33,000 bases of DNA from Dicyema japonicum (taxonomy: Eukaryota; Animalia; Dicyemida), in the NCBI GenBank assembly GCA_011109175.1, contig RDEW01000053.1, positions 257,662-290,661 on the forward strand, given 5' to 3'. Below the pieces are notes generated by a model. The model worked only from the letters and a program-made list of their open reading frames with translations, ran no database searches and was not told where the DNA came from. Below are positions 9,458-33,000 of the stretch, in pieces; positions within the stretch are counted from its first letter, which is position 1; each line of letters begins with the position of its first letter. Made by a program: the position numbers and the translations under genes.

Positions 9458-10258
9458 TTTAACGGGTCCTATGGGTAAGTAAAACATTATACCAGGGTCC
9501 TCGATATCTTTAGGTAAAAAAGTCATCTTTTTAAATAATCTAAAAATAGATTTTAAGGGTACTTACCACTTACCATGGATGTATGTCTTATATAGATGAT
9601 CCGGTTCTCATTGAAATGTTCACTGATAACGGCGTCACTCATAAAGTCGAAGTATATTTATGCATGGAACTTTCAGTAATGAGAGGGGTTTTAGGTCCTT
9701 TCTCAACTAGAACAATTAGTTATTGACAGACAATCACACACTCGGACAACTTTCAGACCTGGGCACTCCAAAACATCTCCTGACCTCACATTATGTTCTC
9801 CATCACTATCTTCGGCGATATCCTGGAGAATTGTATATGACCTACAAACAACGAATTACAAACGTGCGAAATGGGATTCATTCAGAGAAAAAGAAAATTT
9901 TTTATCTGAATTTTCCGAAAGAATTTCAAATCGCTTGACGCCGCAGTTAAATTTTTTAATGATATCATCCTCAGTGCCGACAAGAAATACATTCCAAGAG
10001 GACTCATTGCAGACTATAATCCCAATTTCTCTAAGGACCCTTTTATAATATTCAACTTACCTATAGGACCCCGTAAATTAATTTTTATTAAATTTAAAAA
10101 AGATGACTTTTTTACTTTAAGATGTCGAGGACTTTGTACAATATCTCGTGATGTTTCTTGAACTTCTCCAAAACCTGAAAAAAATTAATTGGAGGCCATT
10201 TTGAATGGGAACCATTTTATAATGTGAATTTTTTACTTTGTTCACAAAAATCACCCTA
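9458..10258. repeat. Foldback-like element with inverted ~90-bp subterminal repeat units
   Basis: The unit GGGTCCTATGGGTAAG...GTCCTCGATATCTTTAGGTAAAAAAGTCATCTTTTT (9460-9535) recurs inverted at 10030-10140. Confidence 0.55.
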
Positions 10259-11200: not shown

Positions 11201-13519
11201 ACATTGTGCTTCCCTCCTGTTCACTATTTATTAATTATTTTCATCATTAAATTTATTTTAGAAACCAATTGAGAACAGGAGTTAATTATTCCAACATGGA
11301 AGTTAGCTCTATGATTGCTTGTATATCTTCACCAAAGAATACAAATTTGTTTTTAATCAATAACTCAATTTTGAATAACAAATTAATCAAATAATTTGAT
11401 AAGTTTTTAAATTATATATGTTGACAGTCCATAACTGGAGTTGAAAAATATTCAGGTATCATTTATATAGCAAAACTATTAAATATTACAATTTGAATGG
11501 GTTTTGAATCTAAAATTGTTACTCGTGATAGTTTTTGATAATTTGGAAAATAGATGAAACCATTTAATAATTGCAATAACTGATTTTATAGATATACAAA
11601 TTAACTAACCTCTTAGCACAATTCTGTGTTTTAACAAGTTAGCCGATTGTTTCGACACACTCCACAGTGCTAGTGGTATGTACTACAGACGAATCTACAG
11701 AAATCGGTCGGATAAATGTGTCTACCAGCACTTGTTATGTCCTCTTTTCTACATCTTGTTTTCAAAATACTTATATCCAGTCACTACGCTGTCACTTTTT
11801 TCATTATGTTAATAATATACATTTTAAATGTAAAAATATACATTTTTAGGCGTCAGAATTAATCGTAGATGTATCACTTAAAGTAAGTCACCAGTTTACA
11901 ATCTTTGAACAGTTCACTAATAACTAATCTCATAATTATTAAAATAAATTTGTTTTATTTTCTTTAAAAAATACGTCATTATAATAAAATCATGATTATT
12001 TTAAATAATGCTTCATGTAAAAAATTCAAGTTATTTAACGTCCGCGTAGTCGTATGGTCAAACATAATAACAACAGAAGTTGGTAAAATTTATAAATTTG
12101 CTATTCTTAAAAAATCCAGTTCACTACGCCATCATTTTTTCATTATGTTAAAATTTTGTTGATAATTTACATTTTTTATGTTGATGTTAGAAACTAATCA
12201 GCAAGAGTTTCTATTATGGGATTTTAGCCTTCGCCGACAAAATTAATATCGTCTGCGTGTATTATTTCTGTTCATTTGACTTTTATTCAGAAGTCTTTTA
12301 ACCCCATTTTTACAAAAGATCAGAGTCTTCTCGAGGGATGCCACAAGATAATTCAAAGTATTGAGATTTCGAGTCACCAATATCCATTCCTTCCAAATGC
12401 TAATCCAAAGAGAATATTCTCCATATCTTGCTCTGGGAACGAAGTTGAGAATCCTTGAGGCAGGAAAAAACTAATCAGATTTATTATTAATTTGATCAAC
12501 AGACTAAAATAAATTGTATTATAACAGCATTATTTGCCAGCATTCTTTTGTGCTCTTTGTAGTCTAGCACGATTTGCATAGGTTTCCGTGAAGCATTTGG
12601 GAGTCTTAACATACTTAATACGACCTTGTGATCGCTATTTGTCAATGTTCTAAAAGGGAGTTCATTAGTAGCCTTTTGAGAGTATGTTTACATATAATAT
12701 AATCGATTTGGGTAAAAATACCTATTTTCTCTCCTTTTTATTTTAGGTCATACATAAGTCTATCAGACAGTTTCCAGGTGAATTGGAAAAACCACTTCCG
12801 TAGTTTCAAATGCTGTTTTAACTACTACGTATAATTCCTGTTTTGGAATTCTATTCTCTTTTACAAAACATAGTCTCCGGAACAGTGCTAAGAGTATATT
12901 TCGGATAGAATCGAAAAAAAATCATTAAGCTCATCTATTGAAATTATCACTCTTCATGTGTGGGGAGAATTCAAATTAGAATTCATGAAGTGAATACTTT
13001 GTGTCCATACGATCCTGAAAAATGGAAAACCAAGTTGCAGTAGGGAGAACTATACACCGACAAGTCTCATTTGTTGTGTGTCAAAGATAACGAAAAATGG
13101 TTTTCAACAGATTCTCCATTCATCTCTAGAATGGGAATTTTTTCTGACAATCAGTGGAGTGACTGGCTATTGTTTTACAATTCTGATAGAAGCTACACTG
13201 CCCATAATATTAGGGAATACCTTACTACGTGTCTGAATATCTTTAAAATTTTTGATAATGATTGGTGGTATTGTACACATTTTTTACTAGACCAATATTG
13301 GTTAAAAGAGTATCTTTTCATGAGAAAGTCGTCAATTCTTGTTGGAAGTCGAACATCGAAAAAATACCCTTCTGATGTTCGTTAATTATATTAGTTTTGT
13401 CAACGACTCCGTTTTTACTAAATCAGCCATTAAGTCAACAAGAATGTAGTCCTATCAAAGTAATCTTTTCAGATTTGAAAAAGTAAATTGTTGTTTTGGT
13501 AATTGAAAACACTTTATAA

Positions 13520-13770
13520 TTATAATAACACCAGAGACCACAGTTACACAAACTAACTAATCACGTGATTCCAACACGCTCTAGCAGGGGCCTCATCTTG
13601 GCCCGATGATCCTCCTTTGACCCCACACAAGCACGTATCGATCGAGTGACTAGATCTTTGCAGTCACGACGGCACGTTTCATGGTTCATTCGTATCAAAG
13701 CTAAAAGAACCATTGGTGGCATGAACTCTCCAGAAATCCTGCCTTTCGTGATTTTGAAAGCTCATTTAGT
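13520..13770 (-). mobile_element. LINE 3' end, same family as the 30567 element
   Basis: Aligns by eye over ~230 bp with 30575-30805 (e.g. GTTACACAAACTAACTA, CACAAGCACGTATCG, AACTCTCCAGAAAT), including the TTA-rich tail. Confidence 0.85.
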
Positions 13771-13864
13771 TTCTATAAAGTGGAAACACTTTAGTTTCTA
13801 TAAAGTGATATAATTCGACGTGTAATCAAAATTAAAAATTAAACTGATTGGAAAGTAATTAATA

Positions 13865-19049: not shown

Positions 19050-20450
19050 CTTTGTGGTCTGCCCACCCGACTTGGTGAAACCCATCTGTGCTCTCCGATG
19101 ACATAAAACCAAACCCTGGGCCATCAAACAAGGACCTTCTTAAATTCAGGACGCAGAACTTTGCTTACTTCAATAAAAAAGAAACAGGTCCCAGTCTTCA
19201 GAAACAGGTCCCAGTCTTCCCAGGCTATAACATTATGCAACGTGACCGCCCTATTGGTCCAAGTGTGGAGTAGTTATAATTGTCAAAAAGGAAATTTCAT
19301 TTACGGAAACAATACATGTCCAAAAACCAGCCCGAAGACGAAAGGGAAATCCACTTATTTCTTAATTAGAATAATCTAGTTTTTTAGCAACCCTACATTC
19401 AATACAAGGACTCCTTATAGAGCAAATGACAAGAGTCCCTACCCACTGTACATTCACTTGTCTAAAATCTCTGTCCTAACCAAGTGGTCACTGATTTACT
19501 ATACTTGAAGTAACTGTAATCCTATTCTCATTACGTTCAAATGAAGATGTCTATAGAAAGTTTATCTTAGCCCGGGACTACAAAATCCTTTGCACGAAGA
19601 AACCTTTCCGCGCAACCGATACATCCGGGAGGGAAAGAAATTGCTTTAAAGTCTACAAATTCAATAATGGCAACATGATAGGATTCGTGACTTGGAGAGA
19701 TATCAGAAACAAGGCAAAGATGAAACAGGAGAGAGTCTGTTCTAACCTCATGTCCATTTTAAGCAAACATACCCCTTCACGAGGATTTGGAATATTCACC
19801 AACTTTGTTAGGACGCCTCCTTGCAAAAACATGGAGAACGAGAATTTTTTAAACAAAATAATGAAACTTGGGATAAAAAGAACCTTATGTGAAGAATTTA
19901 CTTACAGAAGGCTTTTGACTCCATTCTGATGAAATTAATTGCTAGGAAGATCAAACAATTCGAAAATTTCGATTGTAAACTTTTTTAACCGACGAAGAGG
20001 AAGAGTAATTTCACATCCCATATTTTCTGTTACCAAATGCCTGGTCGGCATTCAAAAGGATCCAACTATTCTTTCCATCAGGAGACAATTTCGTTCCCTG
20101 GCGACAAGTTCTTGAATTGACTTCAGCTGCCGTACAGCATCCTCTGGATCAATGTTCTAGGTTGAGGACGAAGAGGAAGGGTAATTGCATGATCCACATA
20201 TTCTGTAACTAAACTGGGGCTTATAGGGATCTTAACTCTCATCCATTCTCTAAAACTTCTCTATGAGAGATATGCCTTCCTGTAGCAGCGACAACACTCT
20301 GGTCCTCGCTTATGCTGACAACATAATCTTATCAACAAGAGACATTGTGATACTCATCAGGTACTCGCTTACTAGATTTACTGGTCAACCTATTGTTGTA
20401 TCTTCCAGATAAGAAAACCGAAAGTGACTCTCATAATTTCACATAGTTCA
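19050..20450 (+). mobile_element. Degenerate LINE ORF2 (2A-like motif, APE, RT), with deletions and nested pieces
   Basis: LSDDIKPNPGP (19091-19123), FPGYNIMQRDRP (APE), YLQKAFDS (~19900) and LAYADNII (~20310). Confidence 0.75.
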
Positions 20451-24559: not shown

Positions 24560-26420
24560 TGATCCAATTCTCAATTATTTAGGCTTTGAAACGGTCAAGA
24601 GTAATTTTATTCTTTCCGTGGTCTTCCGGATTTCCCGATCTCACGAATCCAAAACAATATCGTCTACATAAAAAGAAAAAACTTTTTATTGAATTCTGGA
24701 GTTGAGAAATTGGCCAGAAAAAAGTTAAACAGAGTAGGGGATAACGGAGATCCTTGAGAGACTCCATTGGGGGAGACATGATATGGAATTCGGACCTCGA
24801 AGGCATACAAGTCCCTTTTGTCCATTTAGGAAGTTAATGATTGAGCTTTCCTGCATCTCGAGATTAAAGATTTGCCTGTTAAGTATTTTCCTTGAAACAG
24901 AGTCGGACGCCTTGTCGATATCAATTGAGCAAAGCACTGTTTTCTAATGTCTTAGCTTATTTTAAAATCCATCTCGAATGAAATTGGTCAATGTTTGTAT
25001 TGGGTAGACGTAGATCTTTTTTGAATCCAGACTGAAAAGGTATATCTGATGAGAACTTATTTATTCTCCTTAGCCAAGTCTCTCTAGGATTTTAGATATG
25101 GAGCATAGTAGAGAACAGGTCAAAATGACGCTGGGTCATGTTTTGGTCTTCCAGGTTTTAGTATTCCGAATATGTCTCTTTTCAAGAATAACGGTATCAC
25201 ATTTGATTAATCGAATAGTTGAAGATCGACGTTATGAAGGTAACTCCCACGTCTCCGATTCTTAAATATGATAACTGTAAAGTTATTAGGTCTGTTAGTG
25301 TATGTTCTTGTGAAGCATAGTGTATTTTCACATCTTTTTCCTAAAAGTAGAGCTGATCTGATATCCTTTTTCTTATTTCTGTGTGATAAGAGAGGTGCAT
25401 CCGACTTCTTGTGTTCCTTTTATGAAATCCTTTTGAACGTAATCTCCTCTGATAAAATTTACTTGCCTTTGTAACGTTTCGAACAGCTTTTTACACATTG
25501 CCCTCGTAAGATTTCAATTTACTGTTGTAAACACACAATCCTACTTCAAACTTTGGGCCTTTAGTTTTTTTTACCTTTATTTCATTATCCAATGCTCTGA
25601 TCCTGCGTTTCACTTCTAAGATGATTCAATTAGATTTTTTGAGATACCGACCTCTCGACGAATTTAATCGACGTTTTGGTATAGCCATTGATCTTGCTTC
25701 TAAGATTATTCGGGTAAAGTAGGTGATCATTTATCCAGAGAACTGAAGCTATCCACGTAATGATTCTTCAGTCTGTCGTCCGATATTGCGCAATAAAATT
25801 TTCAGTCGACACCTTTGTAATTGTAGCTACTAGGAATTCTCCCTACTTGATCTTTACCACAATCGGATAATAATTAGCACATTCGCGTTGTTTACTGGTA
25901 ACGCGATGTGCTTTAACTAGCTAACTGTTTCATAGAAGACTGACCTGTTTAGGTGAAAGTGATGAGGAGCAGAGTGTTACGTTACAGTAGGTAGGCTGAT
26001 CCGTCACTCTGAGTGGTGACCTTGTATTTTTGATGGGTCATTCAAAATAGGATACGTTTGCGATAACTATAGATCCCCTCTTATAGCCATAAGACGGTAT
26101 TTTGCATTCAGATTCCTACAGATGATGATCTCATCGAAGGTAGCCAGTCTTGATAGGTTTGGCATAGCCTTTCAAAAAGGAACCAGGAAGCGGAACGTAA
26201 AGGTTCACAAGGTATAGTCTTCCTTTCGTTGTCCCTAGTAAGATTCCAATTTTTTTGTTAACCTCATTATCTTCAACGAGTTTACTCACCACCGAGGAAA
26301 TGTTTCTGCCTTTCAGGTTCTTTTTGAATAAATTGAGCAGGCTTCCAACTCTTCTCACTTCACAATCTGTCCTAATAACCTTGTAACCTGTAGAATGTAA
26401 GGGAAGGGTCATTTAAAGTG
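24560..26420 (-). mobile_element. Degenerate LINE ORF2 (APE plus RT)
   Basis: GYKVIRTD..LYLVNLYVP (APE), ILKPGRPKHDPAS, SIDIDKASDSV, PQWS..SPTLFNFF and FYVDDIV. Confidence 0.85.
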
Positions 26421-29424: not shown

Positions 29425-30566
29425 TTTGCTATACGTTTAAAGTTTTGCTTTATTAAATTCGTTTTAAAAGTAAGAGTGTTTCACAACTTATGATTATGAT
29501 ATAATATTTACGTATTATTTTATCACACATTATGGTGTAATAATCCATTATTTTATACACTTTTTACAATAAGTACACATTTTATCATGATCTCTAAGTT
29601 CTGATCCGAAAAAGAAAATGCTATACTACACCTGTAGATGGTTCCAATTTCTAACAAACCTCCGTTATGGCTTCAGTTGAGTAAGGAAAAGAAAGATCCT
29701 TTTTGAATAAGTGTCGTGTATAAATCGAACCTATAGCTAAATGTTGACTCAAGCGACAACACTAATCACTGCGAGAGATAGAGACTATCAAGCAATCACT
29801 AAGTTATATAAGAAATTTTTGACACTCTGACCCTATGGTTTTTTTACCTACGACGGCTTAAGATTTCTCTCCAAATCGTTTATAGTATCGTTTACTACTT
29901 GTCAAATCAAGAATCCTTTTCAATCATACTATTATTCCACTCTATAGCACGCCAAACATCATGTGAGTCATGTAAAATATGAGGAAAACCGGGAACAATG
30001 CTCCATCTACAGAATTTACAGACAATTTTCCTGCCAGTACAGACAATTTTGACTAAGAGTAAACGTGGTCAATATCCACATCTCATTTTTGGTCTATACA
30101 AAATCCCAGTAATCATCGGCCTCGGCCTAATTCCGACTCTATGACTTTTGAAGAATTTCTACGTGAACGAAAACGAAAATTCGTGAGGGCAGCAACCTAA
30201 CTAAACAACCACCTCTTTGACATCTCTATTCTATTTATTGAACATACAAGATGCGATCATCTAAAGGAAAAATCTGTCGTTAAACCTGCGCCTTGAAGAT
30301 CTCAGAAGGTTAGTGCTTTGGAAATGATCTGTACATGTGGAGTCCGGCAGATCTTTTATTCCATGAAATCACATAAGTCGGATTGGTCTCTACTTATTTT
30401 TTTTATTTAACCCCGGTCCTTTTAAATTGAAAAGAAATTGATGACTAGTAAGAAACGTCACAGCTACGGACGCTCCCAGAGATCCAATAAGTGTTTTTTT
30501 TGGTCTGTGCAGAGGTCGAGAAGCGGACTCGCCTCTTATTCTGGTCTTATTGGTCTCTTGTCATTT

Positions 30567-32200
30567 GAAAAATAATAATAACACCACGGTTACACAAACT
30601 AACTATTCACGTGATCCCAGTACGCTTAGCAGAGACCTCATCTTGACCTGATGCTCCTCCTCGACCGCCACAAGCACGTATCGGTCGAGTGATTGGATCT
30701 TCGCAGTCACGAAGGCGGGTTCCATGGATCATTCGTATCATGGCTTCAAGAAACATTGGTGGCTAAAACTCTCCAGAAATTCAGCGTTCCGTGATTTGAA
30801 AGCTCTTTTTCGGCTAGCCTCGATCTTCAAGACATTTTTCCAAGAGATGAATGGCTCCCAGATACCACATGCGTAAGAGATGCATTGCTCGATGTGTTGT
30901 TTGTATATTTACAGCATGATTTCCGTTCTTCTTTAAGCCTGTGAGGCACTTAAAACATTAGTTTTCTTTTCGCATTTTGTTATGTAGTTTTCAACATAGG
31001 CGAGAATGACATGTGCATGTAAAAAGTCACTCCAAGGATCCTTTGAGATCTTCTAAAAGGAATAATTTCATTTTTTGTTTTCAGTTCGACCTCTGTCTTC
31101 CCAGTCTCTTGTCTGAAGTTTGACGGACTTCTGGCTGTTGGCAACTGACGATTCTTCAATAGCTATTCGTCAAGACGATCCCGATTTTGTTGCAATCTCG
31201 AAGTGGCGATCTGGATGTCCTGATCACGTGAAGCAATTACAACATCGTTGCCATAAGTTAGAATAATATCATTTTTGGTGTCCAGTGTGGGGAGGTCCGC
31301 CATGAATAGATTGAATAATACTGGAGACAAAAGGTATCCTTGATGAAACCACTAGGAAGAAGCCGTGAAATAGATCTTGACTGGCCAATGAGACGCGTCC
31401 TCTCCGACAACTAAGAAAGTTGGCTAGTCATAGTTTAAGCTTTCCAGGAATCTTTCTTAGTTAATTTTTCCAAGTACGAATCCACATCGACAGCGTCAAA
31501 AGCTTTGTGGACGTCTATGGAACAAATTACAGTCTTCATATGTCCCGGCCTGTGAGAAAAACCATATCGTATAAAGTTAGTCAAAGCAGATAAGTAGATC
31601 GAAGTAGACCTCTCCTTTTAAAACCATGTTGAAATAACAAATCAGAGAGAAAATTTTTAATCTTCACAAGACCCAGTCTTTCCAGAATTTTCAACACCGA
31701 ACACAACAACGCGATCGGTCCTTCTTCACTTTTCCGGGTTTCAAAATTGGACGAAGGTGGGCAAGTTTCCATAAGGCAAGAATTTAATTTTTGTCGATAG
31801 ACTGGTTGCAGCGATTTCATAGTCCCCAAGATTCTCAAGGAGGATTATTGGGATCTTATCCGGTCCGCTAGAATAGGTTGTTTTAATTGCTTTCAATAAC
31901 TTTATCACGTCGTTTTCAGTAAAGTAAATCATTTCCTTTTCATTTTTCAATTTTCTGAGATATTTCTGGGGTTCATCCGACTTCGTATGGTCCTTATGGG
32001 ATATTTTCACATATTATTCTATTAGGTTATCTAACTCATATTGGCTATGATCCACCTTAGACGATCTTTCATCCTTTCTTAAAGCGGCTCAGATGATCTT
32101 CCAAATTTCTTAGTGGGTTTATTTCTATTCTATGAAGAGAACACATGCTTCGATCTCTGTGCTTTGACCTACCTGTTTTTTAATTCACTGTTCAAAGCCA
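30567..32200 (-). mobile_element. 5'-truncated, degenerate LINE (Jockey/I-like RT) with (TTA)n tail
   Basis: RT motifs in order: SSGPDKIP, PIALLCSVLKILER, FQHGF, SIDVHKAFDAVD, QGYLLSPDLFNLFMADLP, TYGND (decayed YADD), RILGVTF. A 3' UTR and TTA tail lie at ~30570-30580. Confidence 0.9.
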
Positions 32201-32343
32201 ATTGTCAGCTGATTATAAAAAGACGGTCATATATTACAGTGATACGCTGTTATGTGCAGTGTACTGCATCATTTGTTAACTAGTGCATTTAGCACACATG
32301 CATAAATTAATGTAAGTGTGGGTTATTGCTATGAAAAGGTAGA

Positions 32344-32520
32344 TGGTTGATCCTGCCAATAGTAATAAGCTTATTTTACAGATAAGCCTTTCATGAGCAA
32401 GTGCAACTTCATGCTCTCTAATGAACGAGACCGCTGACGGCTCATTAAATCAGACATAACATACTAGTTTTTGTCAAACTACGGAAATTGCTGTTATAAA
32501 TTTAGAACTAATACACATGT
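32344..32520 (+). pseudogene. Decayed 5' fragment (~180 nt) of 18S rRNA
   Basis: TGGTTGATCCTGCCA, GACGGCTCATTAAATCAG and TAGAACTAATACA occur in the order and approximate spacing of the SSU 5' end. There are many substitutions at normally invariant positions (CCAATAGTAATAAGCTTATTTTACAGAT versus CCAGTAGTCATATGCTTGTCTCAAAGAT), and similarity stops at ~32520. Confidence 0.85.
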
Positions 32521-33000
32521 AAAGCTTATTAATTCTGGTCTTATTGGTCTTTTGTTATTTAATATTAAATGATTTGGTTTATAAAATATTAATTCTAATA
32601 AAAATATAATTTTATTTATATTTACTGGATAACCTAAAAAGTAAATAAAATTTAAAACTTAAAATTAAACGAACGACAATTTACATGTTTAGTGTACGAC
32701 AACATTTACACAAACGAACTGGAAAATTTGGAATTATTTGGTAATAAACTTATAGTAATCAAAGGCTCGCTGCCACTAATTATGGAAAAATAAAGAAGAA
32801 TGACTACTGCAAGTTAGACATAGTTGAAAACTGGTTAAGATCATGATTAACATAAAGTTATGAATTGTTAGCACACATGGAAGGATTGAACCAATATAGC
32901 AGAATATCGTTGTATTTTTCGGGAAAACTATTTATTGGAATCGTTAGAATTCATTTCAAACAGATTTCGCTGTTAATCGGTAAATCATTAAGTAATAATA

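Follow-up and report, generated by a model that had tools for sequence, protein, structure and literature searches.

Twin priming on a second RNA has already been proposed (2025-26) for chimeras of LINE-1 with antisense 5S rRNA, tRNA, U5 and mRNA sequences (PMC13174262, Cell Genomics 2026), in which the 5′ end of the RNA lies at the LINE junction and tRNA halves are found among the RNAs. Classical L1 twin priming, which yields a 5′ inversion, has been reviewed (PMC2912911), and sense chimeras (U6/L1, U3/L1 and 28S rRNA/L1) are attributed to template switching or RNA ligation (PMC13174262; PMC6789731). The general mechanism of trans twin priming on a cellular RNA is already part of the literature. 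In templated filler formation, synthesis-dependent strand annealing (SDSA) and ectopic gene conversion, a repeat-homologous 3′ end copies the repeat together with adjoining foreign sequence and is end-joined; a LINE whose 5′ junction bears a patch of 362 nt that produces an imitation of a target-site duplication has, as far as we know, not been described. The rDNA-specific LINEs (R1, R2 and the 18S-targeting R7 and R8) occupy fixed sites inside intact rDNA units in sense orientation. The targets of R2 are listed in PMC5035012.

Here we describe a decayed, non-functional relic in a 33,000-nt stretch of the Dicyema japonicum genome (contig RDEW01000053.1; the window throughout), in which a LINE is joined to a piece of rDNA. 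Like the antisense RNA/LINE-1 chimeras (PMC13174262), the locus holds a 5′-truncated LINE and an oppositely oriented RNA piece inside one repeat pair, with the RNA 5′ side at the LINE junction and the 3′-truncated end at the repeat. Unlike them, it involves a non-L1, (TTA)n-tailed family related to a mollusc element, 18S rRNA with upstream spacer and a 29-nt duplication and, in a further difference from those chimeras as described, its rDNA piece and flank appear to exist also without the LINE. With classical L1 twin priming it shares the geometry of second-strand-nick synthesis, an inverted segment and one duplication; the inverted segment, however, is not LINE. With the sense chimeras it shares the joining of an abundant nuclear/nucleolar RNA to a retroelement, and also the same orientation if the rDNA piece belongs to the right-flank repeat described below (R), but the rDNA piece is antisense to the LINE, and R is a low-copy repeat of putative retroelement status. 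As in the rDNA-specific LINEs, the LINE physically adjoins rRNA gene sequence, whereas its family is dispersed, its orientation is antisense and its flanks are not rDNA, which places it outside the R elements.

Results

Direct repeat and anatomy of the locus

Two copies of a 29-mer, at 30538-30566 (ATTCTGGTCTTATTGGTCTCTTGTCATTT) and 32532-32560 (ATTCTGGTCTTATTGGTCTTTTGTTATTT; neither with an assigned strand), match at 27 of 29 positions, both differences being C in the left copy and T in the right one, and are separated by 1965 nt. A search of the window thereby confirmed the 29-bp direct repeat around a LINE and an inverted 18S piece, as well as the insert length of 1965 bp, that had been proposed in a sequence-only reading. 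The same reading had named membership of the 29-mer in a dispersed repeat family as grounds for abandoning its interpretation. Only these two copies occur in the 33-kb window, with no third one even at up to 9 mismatches (about 0 are expected in shuffled sequence), and a dispersed repeat inside the window can be dismissed; in the genome, however, the right-hand version is present at least twice according to the reads. A partial look-alike of the 29-mer at 30377-30399 (18/23) fails at full length.

Between the repeats lie, in this order, a 15-nt tail, a minus-strand LINE, a 141-nt spacer and a plus-strand 18S fragment. The single pair of 29-mers encloses more than the LINE, 333 nt of non-LINE sequence being included, and the parts stand head to head, with the tail at one 29-mer, the 3′-truncated 18S end at the other and the 18S 5′ side facing the LINE. 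The left 29-mer belongs to single-copy sequence, since the left flank, the 29-mer, the tail and the sequence up to 30612 form one read contig at unit depth; the right 29-mer is part of a two-copy unit (32199-32606, see below). Both junctions are tighter than initially read. The tail does adjoin the left 29-mer, as had been noticed, yet without the intervening few bases, as GAAAAATAATAATAA begins directly at 30567; and the ~10 bp thought to separate the 18S end from the right repeat are not there, 18S homology reaching 32531/32532, the first base of the repeat.

The LINE and its family

The LINE (30582-32198, minus strand) is a decayed, 5′-truncated non-LTR retrotransposon that retains the RT domain, with the last part of the linker before it and the 3′ region after it, but no endonuclease domain. 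The 5′ truncation recognized from sequence alone was upheld by tblastn, tblastx and weak RVT_1 matches, and falls in the linker before the RT domain. In tblastn, P0002 (XP_029654626.1) from Octopus sinensis, the nearest LINE protein, matches 32195-31675, homology beginning with residue 202 at window position 32195; in tblastx, the element is collinear with an Octopus sinensis LINE locus over 32073-30798 (E 1e-88), at a DNA identity of only ~70%. RVT_1 is recovered as fragments with weak scores, and the copy contains many stops and frameshifts. A homologous protein search with an 89-aa RT piece and an exact-protein look-up of a 275-aa ORF of the window gave no match.

The 3′ tail (30567-30581, minus strand) is GAAAAATAATAATAA on the plus strand and of (TTA)n type on the LINE strand; the same tail type recurs in a further family copy in the window (13525-13764) and also characterizes the consensus of the 23-44 read contigs that stop at 30583. 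The family 3′ end, which on the plus strand reads ...CACC(AGAGAC)CACGG plus an (AAT)n tail, is common to the focal copy, the 13525 copy and these contigs, the focal copy being without 7 nt (CAGAGAC) of it. The family is very abundant in the reads, with depth climbing toward the 3′ end, and is dispersed, with ~1000+ copies in unrelated flanks; the two family copies in the window likewise have unrelated, non-rDNA flanks. The copy at 13525-13764 is bounded by a clean target-site duplication of ~12 nt.

18S fragment and spacer

A decayed 18S rRNA fragment occupies 32340-32531 on the plus strand (RF01960, 70.2 bits, E 5e-19), which substantiates the antisense 18S 5′ fragment of the sequence-only reading, the LINE being on the minus strand. 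The match, obtained by searching a short stretch (Rfam scans of the whole window and of 1-kb pieces missed it), starts at 32340 with model nt 1 and covers ~180-185 of the 1831 model nt. By a hand count on the Rfam alignment, ~18 of ~90 near-universal 18S positions are changed (~20%). rDNA-like read contigs follow the window to 32532, beyond which they proceed as 18S (AGCGCAATTATTAG...TTGACTCTGG). A continuation of 18S through the right 29-mer into the flank was rejected on three grounds: the divergence of these contigs at 32532, the fall of the Rfam score from 70 to 17 bits when the alignment is forced to 32760, and the lack of any Rfam 18S match in 32520-33000. No 18S-like sequence was found left of the left 29-mer.

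The spacer (32199-32339, plus strand) had been read as ~140 bp of non-LINE sequence, possibly 5′ ETS. Its length (141 nt) and non-LINE character held up, as 32199-32531 has no LINE protein similarity in any frame; by the same result, an inverted LINE segment of ordinary cis twin priming was rejected. Resemblance to the region upstream of 18S in the high-copy contigs is confined to the last ~45 nt and does not extend to 32199-32295, with a high-copy contig aligning from 32310 and its loose end matching 32297-32306. Bin 32222-32322 reaches only 10-23% of the read depth of the adjacent 18S bin (32323-32423).

Right flank and second copy of the spacer-18S-repeat unit

The right flank (32561-33000, no strand assigned) is an AT-rich repeat of low copy number by read depth (R). 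Depth right of 32626 corresponds to ~10-20 units, and an exact contig, 32732-33000, is present at ~3.3 units. The alignment of a diverged R copy begins at 32551, and breaks in the contigs indicate additional left ends at around 32577, so that the left ends of R are staggered (~32551, ~32577, 32626 or beyond), while the left flank of the locus is single copy. No ORF, Rfam or tRNA-like signal was seen in the right flank. In the reading preferred below, the 29-mer itself would constitute the first 29 nt of R.

The stretch 32199-32606 (plus strand: spacer, 18S piece, right 29-mer and 46 nt of flank) is recovered as an exact 408-nt contig in runs X1 and X3 at depths of 17.5 and 25.8. The left flank has depths of 9.2 and 13.4 in these runs and the LINE-side contig 31984-32228 depths of 8.5 and 13.5, i.e., the unit stands at ~2x both of them. 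In run X2, the unit is contained in a contig of 848 nt that extends 440 nt leftward into sequence unlike window 30000-33000; its depth of 184 agrees with 408 nt being present twice and 440 nt once. Contig depths and this one 848-nt contig point to an identical second copy of 32199-32606 without this LINE; according to the reads, therefore, the rDNA part and the duplication junction do occur apart from the LINE. The shared unit breaks at 32198|32199, at most 4 nt from the last detectable LINE codon (32195). The contig across the LINE-spacer junction (31984-32228) is at single-copy depth, on the understanding that a source diverged by several percent would share no 31-mers with it. As this contig crosses the seam unbroken at left-flank depth, an insertion/deletion allele at the seam was rejected. 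No branch toward an empty site was seen in the left-flank contig (one sample), and an exact-protein look-up of short ORFs in the two-copy unit gave no match.

Age of the parts

The LINE and the 18S piece have each decayed by ~13-20%, and the 29-mers differ at 2/29 positions. If all parts were of the same age (10-13% decay per copy), so small a difference would have P ~0.02-0.07. The second copy is completely identical over 408 nt, whereas the LINE is full of stops, which argues that the copying is far younger than the LINE.

Discussion

We tentatively prefer, at somewhat less than even confidence, to group the rDNA piece with the low-copy repeat on the right and to regard it as copied to the LINE 5′ junction by homology-guided synthesis from a paralogue; this history and trans capture of an RNA are comparably likely. 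In an old first layer, a (TTA)n-tailed LINE of an abundant family would have inserted by target-primed reverse transcription into AT-rich DNA, 5′-truncated in the linker before the RT domain and with its tail directly after the present left 29-mer; the 29-mer would be the first 29 nt of R and the right flank the remainder of R. In the second layer, another R copy would carry the rDNA piece (ETS-like sequence plus 18S nt 1 to ~185) directly before its 29-mer. An R-bearing 3′ end (the second strand of the target, or a later broken end at the LINE 5′ junction) may have paired with this paralogue over at least 29 nt and, with the paralogous DNA or its transcript as template, may have been extended through the first 29 nt of R and the 333-nt rDNA piece before being joined to the LINE at 32198|32199. 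The chemistry would be that of twin priming (a second-strand primer on a foreign template), guided by long homology to a paralogue and not by microhomology to a free pre-rRNA. Copying would have run from the paralogue to the locus, after LINE insertion, and its model requires no coincidence at the seam, which is the point where copying stopped. Several observations weigh against such copying: the second copy is deduced from depths and one 848-nt contig, the only placeable diverged R copy aligns from 32551 and not from the start of the 29-mer, the 27/29 identity is above expectation if the left 29-mer is older than the LINE (a problem common to trans twin priming), the similar decay of LINE and 18S is directly predicted by joint insertion, and more steps are needed than for a single chimeric insertion.

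The main rival, a possible if somewhat doubtful one, is a single target-primed event in which the first nick primed LINE RNA and the second-strand nick, 29 nt away, primed pre-rRNA at ~18S nt 185, with synthesis running up to the 5′ terminus of the RNA, where a start site or processing site 141 nt ahead of 18S would lie, the cDNAs being joined and the second copy arising as a later partial duplication. The geometry anticipated by the sequence-only reading, which had proposed twin priming in trans on pre-rRNA, was indeed found: the junctions are exact (the tail after the left 29-mer, the 18S end at the first base of the right one), and the head-to-head orientation with the RNA 5′ side at the LINE junction is that of the antisense 5S rRNA LINE-1 chimeras (PMC13174262; mechanism, PMC2912911). 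The family makes target-site duplications (12 nt at the other copy), the ETS-like sequence upstream of 18S nt 1 suggests a precursor rather than mature 18S, and the similar decay of LINE and 18S fits as well. What speaks against this proposal is, above all, the LINE-less copy, which includes the right 29-mer and 46 nt of target flank and must therefore be a DNA-level copy under trans twin priming, with a duplication edge at most 4 nt from the LINE end (a chance of ~1 in 200 for a ~2-kb block). Furthermore, the 29-nt duplication is long compared with 12 nt at the other family copy, the 2/29 difference between the repeats is unexpectedly small for the age of their contents, no more than 1 nt of microhomology exists at the priming site, and only ~45 of the 141 spacer bases are tied to rDNA. 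Taken as a whole, a one-step chimera made by a non-L1 (TTA)n invertebrate LINE, in which the second-strand nick primed a nucleolar pre-rRNA intermediate with run-off 141 nt ahead of 18S, appears rather unlikely; the second copy would in that case be a later duplicate. If true, the one-step history would mean that a non-mammalian LINE has captured 18S/pre-rRNA in antisense, so that trans twin priming would not be limited to mammalian L1 and small RNAs but would include pre-rRNA as well, would imply that the second-strand primer can use a nucleolar precursor RNA, and would provide a route to dispersed rDNA fragments carrying ETS.

Near-identical 29-mers around a LINE and 18S piece decayed by ~13-20% are directly explained only by remobilisation of a pre-assembled block, an improbable history in our estimate, in which an old truncated LINE sat antisense beside an ETS/18S start (e.g., in an rDNA unit or orphon) and a read-through transcript, from antisense 18S to the LINE 3′ end, served an active element of the family as a template in trans, giving a young 29-nt duplication around old contents. 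In stringent-type LINEs, where the 3′ end is specific and the tail a repeat, RNAs bearing that end can be mobilised, which counts in favor of this history, as against the absence of 7 nt of the family consensus from the 3′ end of the focal copy. Besides, no second LINE-spacer junction is seen, 31984-32228 being at single-copy depth (a source diverged by several percent would escape), and the LINE-less copy with the right 29-mer and flank is left unexplained. The 5′ transduction that the sequence-only reading had offered as its alternative amounts to this same remobilised block and shares its low probability. A recent event in which an old LINE RNA and the patch were mobilised in trans was rejected, as the LINE contigs are at single-copy depth and hence have no identical source. 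Nested events or a haplotype artefact, i.e., an rDNA-plus-repeat unit with its own left end at 32199 inserted into or beside the old LINE, or a structural variant of the other haplotype, would fit two identical copies with a common left end, and a stepwise series of left ends, as in the right flank, is characteristic of 5′-truncated retroelement copies. We consider this very improbable: a simple insertion/deletion allele at the seam conflicts with the unbroken LINE-side contig at left-flank depth, and the 29-mer at the LINE tail would have to be there by chance as the stump of another R copy. The latter supposition is hardly credible, as a family of ~10-20 copies is extremely unlikely to leave by chance two 29-mers of R origin in a 2-kb stretch, with one of them precisely at the LINE tail; independent nested insertions landing exactly at the junctions were rejected as too improbable.

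If the preferred reading, homology-guided copying from a paralogue, is true, such copying between dispersed repeats can make or mimic a tail, a duplication, an inverted RNA piece and exact junctions; given this mimicry, entries in LINE-RNA chimera catalogues should be screened for a further, LINE-less occurrence of the RNA part with the duplication. For the copying speak the ~2x unit contig with its 440-nt leftward extension in X2, the repetitive nature of the right flank and the small templated patch at the 5′ junction of the family copy at 13525-13764, the feature that the LINE family has in common with templated filler and SDSA. This patch, 18 nt long (13765-13782) and adjacent to the 12-nt target-site duplication, reproduces target DNA lying close by (13790-13807), so that primer-template synthesis at the 5′ junction does happen in this LINE family.

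Structure of the LINE-rDNA block

The direct repeat described in the sequence-only reading is borne out by our reading of 30300-33000 and by repeat searches: two 29-mers (30538-30566 and 32532-32560) agree at 27/29 positions, with C in the left and T in the right copy at both mismatches, and allowing up to 9 mismatches reveals no third copy anywhere in the 33-kb window (about 0 expected in shuffles). The 1965 nt between them, the same length as reported earlier, comprise a 15-nt LINE tail (GAAAAATAATAATAA, 30567-30581), the LINE body on the minus strand (30582-32198), a spacer of 141 nt (32199-32339) and an 18S fragment on the plus strand (32340-32531). Since the 29-mer pair is real and the inner edges of both copies meet meaningful ends (the LINE tail and the end of the 18S fragment), a directed process must have set the block between two copies of the same sequence. 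Nesting by chance is excluded as too improbable. The original observation is thus confirmed and sharpened. A look-alike of the inner 29-mer at 30377-30399 (18/23, GTCGGATTGGTCTCTACTTATTT), 167 nt before the left repeat, is probably due to chance, because the match fails across the full 29 nt.

Reverse-transcriptase remnants of the focal LINE are interrupted on the minus strand by many stops (about 5 per 165 codons in the best frame) and frameshifts, local differences from the family consensus reach 10-13%, and the copy is old. When an 89-aa open piece was used in an exhaustive profile search, a single informative relative emerged: the Octopus sinensis protein XP_029654626.1, which runs from the end of an endonuclease domain through a linker into the beginning of the reverse transcriptase. 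Its residues 233-388 match 32109-31675, and residues 202-237 match 32195-32094 collinearly with one frameshift (E 6e-4); the Octopus locus is collinear with 32073-30798 by tblastx (E 1e-88), with a DNA identity of only ~70%. Comparison with this protein detected no LINE similarity right of 32198, so the focal copy is truncated in the linker at ~32195-32198. Read contigs (Logan contigs from four runs, X1, X2, X3 and X5 among them, compared with 30000-33000 at a likeness of at least 80%; three runs share one sample, and a second search for runs yielded no further samples) show a family depth of >1000 units at the 3' end, dropping toward the 5' end. Their loose-end consensus at 30583 represents the family 3' end followed by an (AAT)n tail; compared with this consensus, 7 nt of the 3' end are missing from the focal copy.

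The 18S piece was missed by Rfam on the whole window and on a 1-kb stretch, and was found on a 261-nt stretch (RF01960, 70.2 bits, E 5e-19, plus strand, 32340 being model nt 1). A hand count on this alignment gives ~18 changes at ~90 near-invariant 18S positions (~20% change at conserved sites); the piece is a decayed pseudogene fragment. The right repeat had been placed ~10 bp past the end of the 18S; instead, high-copy 18S-like contigs (~300-640 units, across 32323-32524) depart from the window at 32532 and continue as AGCGCAATTATTAGAATTAGTTGACTCTGG, resembling the next conserved 18S stretch of the Rfam consensus, so that 18S homology ends on the first base of the right 29-mer (overlap of at most 1 nt). 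Lengthening the stretch to 32760 forces the RF01960 alignment onward and lowers its score to 17 bits, and Rfam found no 18S-like sequence in 32520-33000 or 30200-30600. The suggestion that the spacer is a 5' ETS holds in part: one high-copy contig aligned from 32310, its loose end matching 32297-32306, and a depth in 32222-32322 of only 10-23% of the neighboring 18S bin (32323-32423) together make the ~45 nt before the 18S demonstrably rDNA-like, but not the other ~97 nt, at the 80% threshold. The high-copy 18S-like contigs of this sample are AT-rich and unusual (e.g., ATGCTTATCTTACAGATTAAGCCAT; the region beyond nt 185 is very short), and may derive from functional host rDNA, from a family of pseudo-rDNA or from a different organism present in the sample. 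The small run X5, bearing the same species label, contains LINE contigs and zero contigs on the 18S piece.

Read evidence for a second rDNA piece without the LINE

Of the new findings, the most useful is that the rDNA piece has a twin lacking the LINE. The left flank is present in single copy: a contig spanning this flank, the left 29-mer and the tail up to 30612 occurs at unit depth (9.2 in X1, 131 in X2, 13.4 in X3). In X1 and X3, an exact 408-nt contig covers 32199-32606 at depths of 17.5 and 25.8, overlapping by exactly 30 nt with a LINE-side contig (31984-32228) whose depth (8.5 and 13.5) is similar to that of the left flank. In X2, this sequence occupies the leading 408 nt of an 848-nt contig, whose other 440 nt extend leftward from 32199 and resemble nothing in 30000-33000; the contig depth of 184 is consistent with 408 nt at two copies and 440 nt at one (the contig orientation convention was confirmed with a pair of records that show a single repeat on opposite strands). 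The doubled depth and the leftward extension therefore point to an identical second genomic copy of the spacer, 18S piece, right 29-mer and 46 nt of flank, unattached to the focal LINE. The shared homology stops at 32198/32199, at most 4 nt from the last LINE codon found independently by the protein match. As the 408-nt copies are identical, the event relating them is much younger than the focal LINE.

The right flank is a repeat: beyond 32626 its depth is ~10-20 units, 32732-33000 is covered by an exact contig at ~3.3 units, a diverged copy aligns from 32551, and breaks between contigs suggest one more left end close to 32577. The read contigs of the one sample gave no indication of an empty allele. 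Over the left flank and LINE (30000-30612, 31724-32228), contigs and window diverge by ~1%, with 12 gap letters in 613 nt in addition; over the 408-nt unit, the difference is just 0-1 letters. This contrast reflects either differences between haplotypes or an unequal polishing of the assembly. Within the otherwise single-copy left flank, 30101-30201 shows ~7-8x read depth and every read has G at 30137 (C in the window), pointing to a small repeat of dispersed type or to a difference in the assembly or between alleles.

Origin of the block

We tentatively prefer a homology-guided copying from a paralogue of the right-flank repeat, R, to the 5' junction of the LINE. The 29-mer would be the left end of R, the old LINE would lie 29 nt inside one R copy, and a different R copy would have a decayed fragment of rDNA as its neighbor. 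At the 5' junction of the LINE, a 3' end bearing R sequence could have primed on this paralogue (DNA or transcript), copying through the first 29 nt of R and 333 nt of rDNA before joining to the LINE. The seam would then be the point where copying stopped, requiring no coincidence, and the identity of the 408-nt copies would follow from recent copying. This reading is weakened by its larger number of steps, by a second copy deduced from contigs, by the unproven boundary of R at the 29-mer, and by the 27/29 identity: the probability of at least this identity after decay in place is 0.07 at 10% per-copy decay, 0.02 at 13% and <0.001 at 20%. That identity is equally awkward for one-step twin priming in trans on pre-rRNA, as proposed in the sequence-only reading, which explains the geometry of the block well and is partly supported, though not established; we rate it only somewhat less likely than our preferred reading. 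Because the second copy includes the duplication and the target flank, it would have to be a later, DNA-level partial duplicate with an edge falling on the LINE-spacer seam by chance (of the order of 1 in 200), and an unusually long target-site duplication would be required as well. Remobilization of an older LINE-rDNA block would account for young repeats around old contents, but leaves the LINE-less copy unexplained and seems improbable; the remaining probability falls to other or artefactual explanations.

Twin priming was defined for 5' inversions of L1 (reviewed in PMC2912911). A catalogue of LINE-1 chimeras (2025 preprint; Cell Genomics 2026, PMC13174262) reports 5S rRNA, tRNA halves, U5 and some mRNAs as mostly antisense to L1, with the RNA start commonly at the LINE junction in 5S rRNA chimeras, and 28S rRNA pieces as mostly sense-oriented; 18S and pre-rRNA are not mentioned. 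As twin priming is proposed there for antisense chimeras, priming in trans is not a new concept, and the present locus, which differs in its LINE clade, invertebrate host and 18S with ETS, would be at most a further example of an antisense RNA/LINE chimera.

Other LINE copies in the window

A second copy of the family 3' end (13525-13764, minus strand like the focal LINE, 83.5% identity) likewise ends in ...CACC and (AAT)n. It is surrounded by a ~12-nt target-site duplication (13505-13516 vs. 13782-13793, GAAAACACTTTA / GGAAACACTTTA), and its 5' junction carries an 18-nt filler (13765-13782), a small templated insertion copied exactly from target DNA 25 nt farther right (13790-13807). Thus, the family of the focal LINE produces target-site duplications, and its 5' junctions show templated synthesis. 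The window is rich in transposons. Further LINE-like remnants (endonuclease, linker, reverse-transcriptase start) at 25123-26165 (minus), 9686-10047 (plus) and 19380-19541 (plus) match the Octopus protein at 28-44% identity; having no DNA similarity to the focal LINE, they belong to other LINE families.
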